Below, piece after piece: positions 37,601-45,502 of a stretch of DNA of 64,000 nt. The stretch lies in contig NW_002060945.1 of NCBI RefSeq assembly GCF_000150275.1, positions 3,433,172 through 3,497,171 on the forward strand, in the 5' to 3' direction. A model generated the notes under the pieces. That model ran no database searches, was not told the origin of the DNA, and saw only the letters and a list, made by a program, of their open reading frames with translations. The DNA is from Trichoplax adhaerens. Its lineage: Eukaryota > Animalia > Placozoa. A program made the position numbers and the translations under genes. Each line of letters begins with the position of its first letter. Position 1 is the stretch's first letter.

Positions 37601-38329
37601 ATTGAAGTAGAATGCAAGTATGATGATTCATCCATAGTTAAGTGTTGCAATGGTAGTAACGATTACTCGGTAGCGTCTTCAATACAACATACTCAATTAT
37701 TTGACTACAAGTTTCAATATTGCTGAAGCTAAATTGAAGTAGAATGCAAGTATGATGATTCATCCATAGTTAAGTGTTGCAATGGTAGTAACGATTAATC
37801 GATTACGTCTTCAATACAACGTACTCAATTATTTGACTACAGGTTTCAATATTGCTGAAGCTAAATTGAAGTAGAATGCAAGTATGATGATTCATCCAGA
37901 GTTAAGTGTTGCAATGGTAGATCAGCAGCTAGCGTATATCTATATTATCTACGTATTGGTAATGTAGTGTCTCAGTGGCGTAGTTTTAAAAATTATCAGG
38001 AATGGTAAATCGACTAAGGTCTGGATTGGTCTTCATCATAATCTAATTTCTGTTTCGATCGATAAATAATTGATTGCTACAGCTGCGTTAACGTTGAAGG
38101 ATGGAAAATCAGTTTCTTCACATTGACTCAAAAGGCAACCAAGGACACAAAGTATGTTCAGCATGCAAGCATAGAATTGATCCTATTATATTATACTGTA
38201 ATCTTTTGAGTCCTTACCTTCATCTAATCCATAATCTGTAAAATCTTGGTCAAATGATGGATCTAATCGAACTGGTTGACAACATCGTTGACATACAAAG
38301 CCTACGACTTCACCATTTTTGTCAGCCAT
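34618..38329 (-). CDS. BECN1: Beclin-1 / Atg6, multi-exon
   Basis: N-terminal [29 protein letters not shown], coiled-coil exons, [38 protein letters not shown] and terminal [21 protein letters not shown]. Confidence 0.95.
37527..37919. repeat. 132-bp tandem repeat, three near-identical copies, inside a Beclin-1 intron
   Basis: CGTCTTCAATACAAC recurs at 37542, 37674 and 37806. Confidence 0.95.
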
Positions 38330-38396
38330 ATTTACTACCTGATACTACTGAGCCTGCGTTACTGTACAGTATTTTGGTAGTAAGGGTCTAAGGGAT

Positions 38397-39300
38397 AGTC
38401 GAGTTCTTTATTGCTATCCTGGTCAACCAAGTACAGTACAGTACAGTACAGTACAGTAGGTTTAATAGGTTTAACCTGCTTTGGCAGTACAGTACAGTAC
38501 AGTACTGTACAGAACTCTACAGTGTACTGTACTGTACAGTACTGTACGCTTCTGTACTGTACTGTACATTCAAAAATACTGTAGATTGTAGACTGTAACC
38601 ACCACCAGAGATGACCATAACAAATATGATGTCACTATTAATACTTTATTTTAATAGTATAGTATACTGTATTATGGGCTAACGCGAGTCAAGTTCTTTA
38701 TTGCTATCCTGGTCAACCAAGTACAGTACAGTACAGTACTGTACAGTATAGAACTCTACAGTGCACAGTACGCTGCCGTACCGTACATTCAAAAATACTG
38801 TAGATTGTAGACTGTGACCATTTCCAGAGATGACCATAACAAAAATATAGGGGCATATGGTTAATTTTCCCTAACAAAAATGATGTCATTATTAATACTT
38901 TATTTTAATATATAGTATATTATGAGCTAACGCGAGTCAAGTTCTTTATTGCTATCCTAGTCAACCAAGTACAACTATGATGTCACTATTAATACTTTAT
39001 TTGAATACATAGTATATTATGGGCTAACGCGAGTCAAGTTCTTTATTGCTATCCTGGTCAACCAAGTACAGTACAGTACAGTACAGTACTGTACTGTATA
39101 TGCAGTATACTGTCATACAGTATACCGTACAGTATACAGTAGAACTCTATAGTGCACAGTACGCTGCCGTACCGTACTGTACATTCAAAAATACTGTAGA
39201 TTGTAGACTGTGATCACTTCCAGAGATGACCATAACAAAAATGATGTCACTATTAATACTTTATTTTAATATACTGTATAGTATATTATAGGCTAACGCG
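38397..39300. repeat. Four-copy tandem repeat (about 290, 248, 97 and 269 bp) with variable internal (GTACA)n tracts, between the Beclin-1 start and dapF
   Basis: Units start AGTC(G/A)AGTTCTTTATTGCTATCCT at 38397, 38687, 38935 and 39032 and end GCTAACGCG. Confidence 0.93.
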
Positions 39301-39887
39301 TAAACTAGGCCTTCCACGGCGTTGCTGCTGGTCTCCCTAATACATTATTGATTCTCATTTTGTATATCCGTTATCCAGTATAGCTTGATAGTAACATGAG
39401 CGAAAATATCTACAGTATTGAAAAGTAAAATTACAATAATATTCTACTACTCCATAATTCCAAACGGCTACCGTAAGCTCGGGTGAACATTGTACTGCCT
39501 CCACGCTGCAGTACAGGCAGTAACGACAGAAACACCTCCTACCTCTGACAACGGACTACGAAAGAAAAAGTTGATCCTCCTAAAATCTCAAACCAATCCC
39601 CCTCTAGCTAAATGAAGCCTTCCCTCCACCCCTTTCTCCTTACCAAAAAGAACCAGCTTCATACTGTAGTACCGTAGATCGCTAGCAAACTGTGTACAGC
39701 CTCCTTTGATCGTTTGAGGACAGAGCCTGCCAGTACCTCCCTCATACACTCCAACGTTTGCCCGTCGTACTGCACAGTTACTCATTCAAAATTTAAAGAA
39801 ACTAAATGGATCCACATCAAGCACATTGGATTTTATAATTTGAGGGGAATATTATTATATTATTCATCGACGTAATTAACCAAAGAT

Positions 39888-40700
39888 ATGCTTCAAAAAG
39901 TTCCTTTTGTAAAAATGCATGGTCTCGGTAATGATTTTGTTATTGTTAATGGATGTCATATGCCTAAAAGCTCGGATATTCACAGCTTTGCAAAGGAGAT
40001 TTCTGATAGAGAACTTGGTGTAGGTTGTGACCAGTTTATTATTTATAGACAAGACAGTGATAAAATAAATATGACGATTTACAATCAAGATGGGTCTGGT
40101 GCAAAAGCTTGTGGAAATGCATCAAGGTGTTTAACTAGATTATTATTTGATCATACAGGAGCTAAAAATATAAAGCTTGATGTTGATGGGAGGGTTGTTT
40201 CTGGCAAGTATATTGATAAAAATACAATAAAAGTGGATATGGGTCCGCCATCATTTGAAAGTAGCTGGATGCCTGATAGCACTGACTTGTGCTCACTTGC
40301 AGAGCGTTATATGATCGAGCCTAAAGAGATGATATGTGTTGATGTTGCTAATCCACATTTAGTAATTTTTTCTAAACTTTCGAAAAAAGATATGGGGATG
40401 ATTGGTAATGATTTCCAAAAATGTGAGCTGTTTCCAGATGGCGTAAACGTTAATTTTGCTAGGATTGAAGACAACAAGATCAATTTAACGGTTTGGGAAA
40501 GAGGTACTGGCTTTACTTATGCTTGCGGAAGCGGTGCTATTGCAACTTTTGCCGCTGCAAATAAGCTAAGTTTTTTCGGTGATGAGGCTGAGATAGTCTT
40601 TAAACTCGGTTCTTTAAAAATGCAAAAGCAAAATGATAGTGTTTTAATGAGTGGGCCAGCTAGCTACGTATTTACTGGAGAGTATTTGTATAGCCAATAG
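39888..40700 (+). CDS. dapF: Diaminopimelate epimerase, bacterial (Rickettsia-like), intronless, 270 aa
   Basis: FVKMHGLGNDF, GVGCDQ, NQDGSGAKACGNASRC (first catalytic Cys), NPH, VNVNF, WERGTGFTYACGSGA (second catalytic Cys) and MSGPA; ORF is uninterrupted. Confidence 0.97.
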   Translation: MLQKVPFVKMHGLGNDFVIVNGCHMPKSSDIHSFAKEISDRELGVGCDQFIIYRQDSDKINMTIYNQDGSGAKACGNASRCLTRLLFDHTGAKNIKLDVDGRVVSGKYIDKNTIKVDMGPPSFESSWMPDSTDLCSLAERYMIEPKEMICVDVANPHLVIFSKLSKKDMGMIGNDFQKCELFPDGVNVNFARIEDNKINLTVWERGTGFTYACGSGAIATFAAANKLSFFGDEAEIVFKLGSLKMQKQNDSVLMSGPASYVFTGEYLYSQ

Positions 40701-40779
40701 TTAACAAGTCATTACGTTTGGCTGTCGTTTTAATATTTATGACAGAGAGATTATCAAGGATAATTTATTAAAATCTGGT
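40690..40779 (+). pseudogene. mtaB: 5' stub of a bacterial MtaB/MiaB-family tRNA methylthiotransferase, overlapping the dapF stop
   Basis: Reads (ATA)[28 protein letters not shown], carrying the TFGCRxNxxE/D N-terminal motif. No ATG at the expected start, one in-frame TAA, truncated after about 30 codons. Confidence 0.8.
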
Positions 40780-41195
40780 AGTGATGCATATCCTAGTAAT
40801 GTATTTTATTTGTATTCAAGGCTACTTAAGCGCGCTGCTAAATTATCCAATGAAAAAGCTGATGGATCACTGAAAGCATTGCCAGTTGTTGATGCGCGAG
40901 CTGCTGATGTATCTGCTTATATTCCTATAAATGTGATCTCCATTACTGATAGTCAGGCTTTTTTTTTGAAAGAGAGTTATTTCATAAGGATCTAGTGCCA
41001 ACTGTAAATCTTGGTATATCGGTCAGACGTGTTGGTTCAGCTGCGCAGATTAAAGTAATTGAAAAAGTTGGCTCAATGAAACTGAAACATGCTCTATTTA
41101 GAGAGATGGGAGCGTTTGCTTAATTTAAGTCCGATCTAAATACATCAACACAACTAATTAGGCATGATTAGAAATTGGCAGAGCTTTTAATACAA
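40774..41195 (+). pseudogene. atpA: Internal fragment of F1 ATP synthase alpha subunit, decayed
   Basis: [21 protein letters not shown]…GSLKALP…[17 protein letters not shown], frameshift in a T-run at ~40960, then [29 protein letters not shown]…[13 protein letters not shown]…*KLAELLIQ. Substitutions at normally invariant residues and two stops. Confidence 0.92.
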
Positions 41196-42824
41196 GTAAA
41201 TTTATTTTTGATTAAAAGGACGTTAGTTCTAAGAAGGAGAAGTTCAAGAATAAATAATTTAAGTATATGAAAGTAATTGAGACATTTTCAAATTCATTCT
41301 CTAATTTCTTTAGAAATCCAAAAAGCAGTCTCACATTAGGCAAGTTTGTTTGGTTTTTTATATATTGTATCTTTACATTATACCCTAGCCAAGCAATTGA
41401 TAGAGTACTGTAATTGGTTTTGGTAATTTAGATACTCAATTGATGCCAAGAGTTGGAGTTTATATTCAAGAATTTGGTGTTCAGCGTTTTGTAATTGTTA
41501 CTTAATATTGATAGTATTGATTACAACAATAATATTTAAAATGATTGATATTCCACTATATTACTTTCCGCGAAGTTATATAACATATGTAGTAATGGTA
41601 AGTAAAACTCAATATACTATTACTGGAATGATACTTGCTATATCTGCAGTACGCAGTTTTGTTACCGTTAATGTTAGAATGACAATATACGCTGAGCTAT
41701 GTATTGATATAAGTTAAAATTTAAAAATCGTATTTTACAGGAGATGAAGAAGTTAAGGAATAAATAGACTTAACATTCATCATTAAATTAATCAATATTT
41801 AAGAACAGAATGCAATCAATATAAATAGTTACTCTATCACTGATGGCATATTTTTCTTTACTGATCTTATGTATATGCACATAATAATATAAAGACCTAA
41901 CTTGTAAAACAAGTTAATTTAGTGATAATCATCGCGTTAACTTATGGTTTATTTGGATCCCAAATTTTTATCTAATCGTGAAAAATAAAAATAGAGATAT
42001 ACTGCTAGCCTAAAAATTATGCAGCAGTGGATGAATAAAATAATGGAAAATTTATCCTTTCAGAAAATTATACTAGAGCTGCAGAATTCTTGGTAAGATC
42101 ACGGATATGCAACTTGGTTGGAGGGACGGGTGTGCCTTTGATCTGCTCGCGATTTCATTCCTATATTGTACTGTATTGTATCCTATATTGCCGTACATTC
42201 ATAATGGGAGATTGTAGATATTTCTCCTTTAATATATAGTTAATGGATTGGTTATTGAGATGTTCCTGCTTCTAGATCCCCCCCCTAGTATCTAGAAGCA
42301 AGGACCAACTGCTAGAAGTCCATGCAATAAATAGGCATAGAATGCGTAAAGCCGAGCGGACAGTACAGACGATACTAGGTATCAAGTCTGCCACACTATT
42401 AATAATATACGTACCTGAACATGGCCTAAAGTAGCAAGATATTAACTGCAACATTAAATGCTTACTGTCTTCGGCTAGATATCCATATAAATTCTATATA
42501 CATACTCAAACATGGTATACCACATACTCTGTAAAGTAGAATATGATCCTGTCCGGTGTCATCATATCCGATCGCTATTTTATTTATTTAAAGCCTTTTG
42601 GCCTGTAGATAGAGCCAAGCTAAAGATGCAAGAAATGCATACTATCTCGACGTCTGGATCAAGTTAATGCCCCTAATGTAGCATTTTCTTTCTAATTTCT
42701 CTATTAGCATTGCTTTCATCGCCCAAGAAAAGGGATTACTTAGATGGTGTTTTAATCGATGCATCTCAGCCTTGTATAATTTACACGTATTCGTATATAG
42801 CATAGAATAATCACTACTTTAGTC

Positions 42825-45502
<2,678 letters not shown>

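Follow-up and report, generated by a model that had tools for sequence, protein, structure and literature searches.

What is a bacterial gene doing between two animal genes, and how did it come to lie there? The question is raised by dapF, the gene for diaminopimelate epimerase, in the placozoan Trichoplax adhaerens. The window, meaning the whole stretch of DNA analysed here, is 64,000 bases long (C1412:3433172-3497171) and belongs to a multi-megabase scaffold of the 105.6-Mb, 1414-contig T. adhaerens assembly; positions below are those of the window. We find that dapF stands in bacterial DNA of ~2.26 kb (~39857 to ~42115), that this DNA is a mosaic of three donor pieces, and that dapF is under purifying selection while the scraps attached to it have decayed neutrally. 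A first-pass annotation of the sequence had advised checking the literature before calling the gene new, and the advice was sound: Driscoll et al. described dapF (TRIADDRAFT_54386) as a rickettsial-type lateral transfer in T. adhaerens in 2013 (PMC3641634), and Kamm et al. 2019 (PMC6879607) report nuclear dapF and lysA in Trichoplax sp. H2. The central claim, the transfer of dapF, has been in print since 2013 and only details are new here, namely the three-piece anatomy of the 2.26-kb insert, the neutral clock with its selection test, the Rickettsiaceae donor and a second animal contig.

The reading frame at 39888-40700 (+) runs from ATG to TAG with no stop within and no intron, and encodes 270 amino acids; in the protein database the entry for this product is TRIADDRAFT_54386 of Trichoplax adhaerens. 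Against TIGR00652, the DapF equivalog model, the protein scores 243 bits (curated cut-off, 115 bits) over positions 3-268 of the 270 in the model, and it matches PF01678 (DAP_epimerase) twice, in both halves of the protein, at 126 bits. The score for NF038284, the bifunctional DapF/glutamate racemase, was 84 bits and stayed below the cut-off of 350. The catalytic residues Cys75 and Cys213 (numbering of this protein) are present in GN and GSG contexts, together with N15, Q49, N66, N155, N187, E204 and R205. All 61 near-invariant columns, defined by conservation of at least 97% in 114 bacterial DapF homologues and including the catalytic cysteines, are kept, and the alignment with solved DapF structures spans the whole protein. 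Since an in-frame TAA lies four codons upstream of the ATG, DapF has no N-terminal extension. These features agree with the earlier description of an intronless 270-residue DapF with both cysteine motifs. We consider it very probable that dapF is kept by selection as an active epimerase.

The bacterial DNA extends beyond this gene on both sides. The features of the insert and of its animal flanks, with the basis for each, are listed here.

38329-39856, no strand: animal intergenic DNA from Beclin/APG6 (-, on the left) to the insert (H2 annotation mapped by alignment)
39857-39887, + strand: left insert edge, ~31 bases, end of a donor 129-aa gene and the spacer after it (blastn to contig L002)
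39888-40700, + strand: dapF, diaminopimelate epimerase (open reading frame, profile matches, conserved residues, omega ~0.19)
40690-40785, + strand: mtaB stub, codons 1-32, tRNA methylthiotransferase (alignment to bacterial mtaB)
40786-41195, + strand: internal fragment of atpA (ATP synthase alpha), ~137 codons (alignment to bacterial atpA)
41185-41267, + strand: 3' end of a fliJ-like gene (149 aa in the donor) with a stop inside (homology to donor relatives)
41268-41760, + strand: broken remnant of a donor 264-aa membrane-protein gene (tblastn pieces in different frames)
41761-42042: donor spacer between the membrane-protein remnant and the glyQ stub
42043-42113, + strand: glyQ stub, codons 1-23, glycyl-tRNA synthetase alpha, right insert edge (homology to relatives)
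42114-42824, no strand: animal DNA up to the TMEM41/VTT-type gene (first coding exon near 42825, +)

Piece A (39857-40785) is 89.3% identical in DNA to the nearest bacterial contig, L002, over 929 bases by blastn. Since the homology of every bacterial relative to the dapF locus ends exactly at 40785, piece A comprises the 31 bases before dapF, dapF itself and mtaB codons 1-32. The mtaB stub overlaps the end of dapF as in the bacterial relatives, where this gene has UPF0004 and Radical_SAM domains; in Trichoplax its start ATG has become ATA and codon 5 is a stop. The atpA fragment, piece B, is disrupted by two stops, two deletions of 3 bp each and a frameshift of +2 bp, and motifs that do not vary among the bacteria have changed in it (ETQAG to DARAA, TDGQIF to TDSQ.F). 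It is 74-78% identical in DNA to the atpA of four Rickettsiaceae genomes, in which the gene is intact. Piece C (41185-42115) corresponds to a third locus of the same bacterial genomes, with the end of the fliJ-like gene, the membrane-protein gene and the start of glyQ. The membrane-protein remnant opens with an ATG at 41268 and reaches a stop after ~48 codons; its frame then changes, and the tblastn pieces at 41291-41401, 41404-41541 and 41714-41752 differ in frame. The glyQ stub has a stop at codon 18. All remnants other than dapF are broken, and each of these five contains stops. A search for bacterial similarity upstream of 39857 found none.

In the complete chromosome of a relative (G004), the loci of pieces A, B and C lie at ~1.199, 0.966 and 1.093 Mb. 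Since these loci are far apart, the order seen in Trichoplax is a product of the insertion and not the order of the donor. The joins between the pieces show microhomology of 4 and ~10 bases, the latter at the atpA/fliJ-like join. The three distant donor pieces were probably joined end to end at these microhomologies, as in double-strand-break repair, and pasted as ~2.26 kb of Rickettsiaceae DNA between Beclin and TMEM41; dapF would have been the sole complete gene to arrive. The first-pass annotation had recognized the erosion of the mtaB stub and the atpA fragment, which the stops, frameshift and altered motifs in the alignments confirm, but its extent of 39888-41195 was too small and the third donor piece was missed.

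The insert has the same surroundings in independent data. In the Trichoplax sp. H2 assembly, the same locus has the same junctions at 99.1% identity, and the annotated neighbours are APG6/Beclin (-) and, across the insert, a VTT/TMEM41-type gene (+), consistent with the earlier statement that dapF lies between two spliced animal genes. Sequencing runs of 8 studies under two organism labels contain most of the stretch. In one DNA run (X1), a single contig of 3924 bases covers 39255-42800, from animal DNA through the insert into animal DNA, at a depth of 29, equal to that of the unique flank. The checks that had been proposed on the junctions, the depth relative to the flanks and the orthologous locus all point to a genuine insertion. 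The animal DNA at 38400-39300, directly upstream of the transcribed leader described below, is a high-copy repeat, with DNA word depth of up to ~14,700 against 29 in unique sequence and in the thousands at 38400-38840. It consists of short GTACA-type repeats and of a unit, beginning TATTATRGGCTAACGCG, that occurs three times, at 38677, 39022 and 39291.

Because dapF still sits in the original patchwork, the dead scraps serve as an internal neutral clock, which reads ~0.16 substitutions per site since arrival. The four nearest bacterial genomes have an intact atpA, with a non-synonymous divergence (dN) among them of 0.006-0.024 over the segment, whereas the Trichoplax fragment shows a dN of 0.16, three indels in 415 bases and two stops. 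Where the four bacteria all have the same amino acid, the codons of the fragment show 42 non-synonymous and 11 synonymous changes, which is the neutral ratio. On the Trichoplax branch of dapF, 14 changes are non-synonymous and 18 synonymous, against a neutral expectation of ~4 to 1 (binomial test, p = 7e-6; Fisher's test against atpA, p = 0.002). The ratio of non-synonymous to synonymous rates (omega) on this branch is ~0.19, far from the value near 1 that would have spoken for neutrality, and there is no indel. The strains tell the same story on a shorter scale: dapF differs between them at 3 synonymous and 2 non-synonymous sites, and 495 bases of scrap differ by 8 substitutions and one 5-base insertion (2 non-synonymous against 11 neutral-class changes, p = 0.02). 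Purifying selection on dapF and neutral decay of the attached scraps are thus supported, in line with the first-pass proposal of an old nuclear insertion with selection on dapF only; omega, the shared junctions and the neutrality of atpA all agree with it, and the decayed atpA, when sought in the four nearest bacteria, proved intact there.

Among the strain differences, the 5-base insertion is found in the H2-type RNA libraries and follows 40801; X19 in addition lacks one base at 41205, and both changes are in scraps. The atpA fragment has TAA in T. adhaerens where the H2 assembly keeps CAA. Even close strains show the scraps still drifting.

The insert also seems to be transcribed. Contigs of the two declared RNA libraries from an H2-type organism (X19 and X20) cover 39313-39590 and 39925-41576, and a presumed RNA library from an H1-type organism (X14) covers 39382-42302 without a break. 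Coverage is absent from 38841-39134 and from most of 42369-42662 in all three libraries; in X20 it resumes at ~42596, in a contig that continues into the TMEM41 side. The contigs, which carry no strand, therefore cover dapF and skip the neighbouring intergenic DNA, and these uncovered bins argue against plain carry-over of DNA. No splice joints within the insert were reported in the RNA-library contigs, and an AATAAA at 42327 is in keeping with coverage that ends near 42302. The segment at ~39300-39856 is probably a 5' leader; it has upstream ATGs at 39396, 39612 and 39806 and three short upstream open reading frames. An unspliced RNA from ~39300 to ~42300 would then encode the plain bacterial enzyme of 270 residues. 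Published gene models of 350 and 382 amino acids splice in scraps of mtaB and atpA, and the RNA contigs pass straight through the supposed introns; these longer models are most likely errors of annotation, a point that Driscoll et al. had made earlier for the two predicted dapF introns (PMC3641634).

One part of the leader stands out. In both H2 RNA libraries, 39313-39590 is represented by 260-280 bases at a depth 5-15 times that of dapF, both contigs end exactly at 39590, and coverage is zero at 39723-39869. This segment could be a separate short RNA, a strong 5' exon, or the effect of a strain difference that breaks the contigs. An Rfam search over 38000-43000 gave only sub-threshold miRNA-like matches in repeats, and nothing at 39313-39590.

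Which bacterium gave the DNA? After the two Trichoplax proteins, the best matches of DapF have 75-87% protein identity, and the named ones are metagenome-assembled genomes labelled 'Rickettsiaceae bacterium' (82-87%); the nearest bacteria are 89% identical in DNA. In the tree, Trichoplax dapF nests within a clade of Rickettsiaceae sequences. The gene order in the donor relatives is dapE (-), the 129-aa gene, dapF, overlapping mtaB and gpsA, and the transferred stub preserves the dapF-mtaB overlap. Among 251 genomes sampled from the same order, only the Rickettsiaceae metagenome-assembled genome itself exceeds 59% identity, in a search that gave no kinship labels and in which the split between Rickettsiaceae and Midichloriaceae is not directly visible. 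According to a recent preprint, the main placozoan symbionts are Midichloriaceae that live in the lumen of the rough endoplasmic reticulum, and Megaira and a sporadic 'Rickettsiaceae-1' also occur in placozoans. Driscoll et al. suggested that the gene came from RETA, the Midichloriaceae symbiont of today (PMC3641634). Since the best named relatives are Rickettsiaceae assemblies and the other genomes of the sample reach at most 59%, this suggestion is unsupported. By sequence kinship, the donor was probably an uncultured Rickettsiaceae bacterium and not the Midichloriaceae symbiont. In the donor relatives (L032, G002:C17:190500-194500), fliI and fliJ-like genes adjoin glyQ, and this Rickettsiaceae lineage has flagellar-type export genes.

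A second animal copy lies on a contig of a metagenome assembly (L015; ENA ERZ27263980 k141_175779) that matches the Logan contig L016 of SRR6854575; the features described here are at 870-2240 and 2624-2788 of L015. Its dapF is intact, 81% identical in protein to Trichoplax DapF, and keeps all 61 conserved residues. The mtaB remnant that follows is disrupted by an insertion, a duplication and a frameshift; its divergence at codon positions 1 and 2 is 27-31%, compared with 2-5% among bacteria. In the flank lies the final exon of a DPH7-like gene of the WD40 type, with 72% protein identity to the T. adhaerens copy, which is on a different scaffold, far from dapF; a search of solved structures with this exon gave no useful match. 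The source is an animal, probably another placozoan. A similar-looking motif suggested a repeat shared by L015 and Trichoplax, but a genome search for it found nothing.

The insert borders and the disabling mutations are not common to the two animal copies. In the tree, these copies form a weakly supported group (bootstrap 72-77) to which the closest bacterium is sister, and approximately unbiased tests of a single versus an independent origin gave p = 0.86, 0.23 and 0.059, rejecting none. The copy on L015 can be explained either by one ancient transfer followed by rearrangement or by two independent captures. Tentatively, and with considerable doubt, we raise the possibility of a double capture, in which each of two placozoan lineages acquired dapF from one Rickettsiaceae lineage, other than that of the main present-day symbiont, and retained it; the sites and junctions of the two copies differ, and the copies have no disabling mtaB mutation in common. 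If true, one enzyme would have been domesticated convergently, the copies would be genomic traces of a symbiont that was past or sporadic (Megaira, perhaps, or 'Rickettsiaceae-1'), and a host-side DapF would have been needed repeatedly for a circuit of diaminopimelate and lysine between bacterium and animal.

What could the enzyme do in the host? A search for the other pathway genes, which the first-pass annotation had recommended, found an intact, intron-free lysA of 403 amino acids on a large T. adhaerens scaffold (G000:C1405:1987865-1989028 (-), equal to L020:1480-2691) and 100% identical in Trichoplax sp. H2. Since the bacteria nearest to this nuclear lysA are just 61-62% identical, it comes from a different donor and probably from an older transfer; lysA from the Rickettsiales symbiont of H2 is 52% identical to it. 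No match above the family cut-off for dapE exists anywhere in the T. adhaerens assembly, and dapA occurs only on small bacterial-type contigs, indicating that the host encodes just the last two lysine steps. In the pathway that we propose, DapF would interconvert LL- and meso-diaminopimelate in the host cell, and together with the separately acquired lysA it would complete the last two steps to lysine. The diaminopimelate would be made by the intracellular bacteria, which carry the upstream dap genes, and the same meso-diaminopimelate could return to the symbiont for cell-wall synthesis. Taken as a whole, a mosaic insertion from Rickettsiaceae, a selected dapF and completion of lysine by host DapF and LysA form an explanation that we consider reasonably likely; that the lysine route is the main use of dapF has about an even chance.

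Other explanations have to be weighed against this one, beginning with the assembly itself. The T. adhaerens assembly does contain bacterial contigs, with a second dapF on the 1.2-kb C290 and dapA and lysA on small contigs, and a stretch of a living symbiont might have been misjoined to the animal scaffold. However, such contamination or chimerism is difficult to reconcile with identical junctions in the independent H2 assembly, with one contig of an unrelated DNA run that spans both borders at flank depth, with three donor genes cut to stubs or fragments and five stop-bearing remnants, and with an order of pieces seen in no relative. The dapF of C290 is just 30% identical and cannot be the source; with its dapA and aminotransferase neighbours and a GC content of 28%, it belongs to another bacterium (G000:C290:1-1202, or L019, holds the end of dapA, the complete dapF and the start of the aminotransferase gene). 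We regard an assembly artefact as extremely improbable and the nuclear transfer as virtually certain. Within the chromosome, dapF might still be a passenger, transcribed by chance and so far spared a disabling mutation. It has no intron and no eukaryotic feature beyond the possible AATAAA, its transcript continues through 1.4 kb of dead bacterial scraps, the leader has upstream ATGs, and H1 and H2 dapF differ by 2 non-synonymous changes and 1 synonymous change. On the other hand, an open frame survived in only 1.5% of the dapF copies simulated with 0.16 neutral substitutions per site, the 813 bases would escape any indel with a chance of 0.3% at the scrap indel rate (3 in 415 bases), and the probability of survival as a passenger is the product of the two. 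The low omega, the retention of all near-invariant residues and the same pattern of intact dapF and decayed mtaB on the second animal contig also speak against a passenger, and we think chance survival quite improbable.

The use of a selected DapF might also differ from the one proposed. According to a speculation published by Driscoll et al. in 2013 (PMC3641634), host DapF would mainly serve or control the intracellular bacteria by providing meso-diaminopimelate for peptidoglycan, which would tie symbiont growth to particular host cells, and lysine would be a by-product or irrelevant. DapF acts at the exact branch point of cell wall and lysine; Driscoll et al. reported a rickettsial-type murA besides dapF in the nuclear genome and drew a parallel with cell-wall genes of aphids and rotifers (PMC3641634), and the alphaproteobacterial dapF transferred in mealybugs is part of a host-bacterium peptidoglycan mosaic (PMC6838666). 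By contrast, Trichoplax DapF lacks an N-terminal extension or signal peptide, the main symbionts are in the lumen of the rough endoplasmic reticulum, and the intact nuclear lysA gives meso-diaminopimelate a use on the host side. We consider a main role in symbiont control unlikely. Returning to the explanation by host lysine completion, several points count against it. The RNA coverage was read from assembled contigs, which give neither raw reads nor strand, ends or expression level, and carry-over of DNA may have contributed to it. The leader with its three upstream ATGs and the lack of any eukaryotic signal beyond one AATAAA speak against it as they speak for a passenger. The case for selection presupposes a joint arrival of dapF and the scraps, and the dapF branch may begin before the transfer, in which case its early part reflects bacterial constraint. 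The activity, protein and phenotype of DapF in the host are only predicted. Kamm et al. report a capacity for lysine synthesis in the 'Panama' symbiont of H2 (PMC6879607), and a lysA of this symbiont has been recorded; the host genes may therefore duplicate what some symbionts can already do. Finally, dietary meso-diaminopimelate would need LysA only, and not DapF.

How does the locus compare with what has been described? The studies of Driscoll et al. (PMC3641634) and Kamm et al. (PMC6879607) concern the same gene at the same locus, bacterial and rickettsial-like on a large eukaryotic scaffold, and take it as a complete bacterial reading frame without the two predicted introns and as one of the last two lysine steps. 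The main text of the former and the accessible part of the latter make no mention of atpA, mtaB, other remnants or pseudogenes, and these parts hold no selection test, whereas the present analysis has one. In whiteflies, dapF and lysA of bacterial origin in the nuclear genome complete, jointly with intracellular bacteria, a pathway of diaminopimelate and lysine (Bao et al. 2021, PMC8659303), as they would in Trichoplax. The transferred whitefly genes rescue Escherichia coli mutants, and silencing of lysA lowers lysine, fecundity and symbiont titre (PMC8659303). In mealybugs, an alphaproteobacterial dapF is likewise found in the animal nucleus (Bublitz et al. 2019, PMC6838666). Both are sap-feeding insects with obligate nutritional symbionts, whereas Trichoplax grazes algae and has a symbiosis of uncertain benefit. 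The whitefly genes are functionally proven, while Trichoplax dapF is known here from its sequence. Unlike the whitefly and mealybug genes, Trichoplax dapF still lies within the original patchwork of donor scraps.

Nuclear insertions of mitochondrial DNA (NUMTs), of plastid DNA (NUPTs) and of Wolbachia DNA in its hosts consist of non-adjacent donor fragments that are joined at microhomologies and then decay neutrally. The Trichoplax insert is like these mosaics, but one complete gene in it has been preserved by selection. The scraps around this gene point to a donor lineage other than today's main symbiont. With the core fact published in 2013, the value of the present analysis lies in such details and in a testable hypothesis. 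Animals are generally held unable to make lysine. If it is true that DapF and LysA of the host are fed by intracellular bacteria, Trichoplax would be an exception in a phylum among the earliest to branch within the animals, mirroring the whiteflies.

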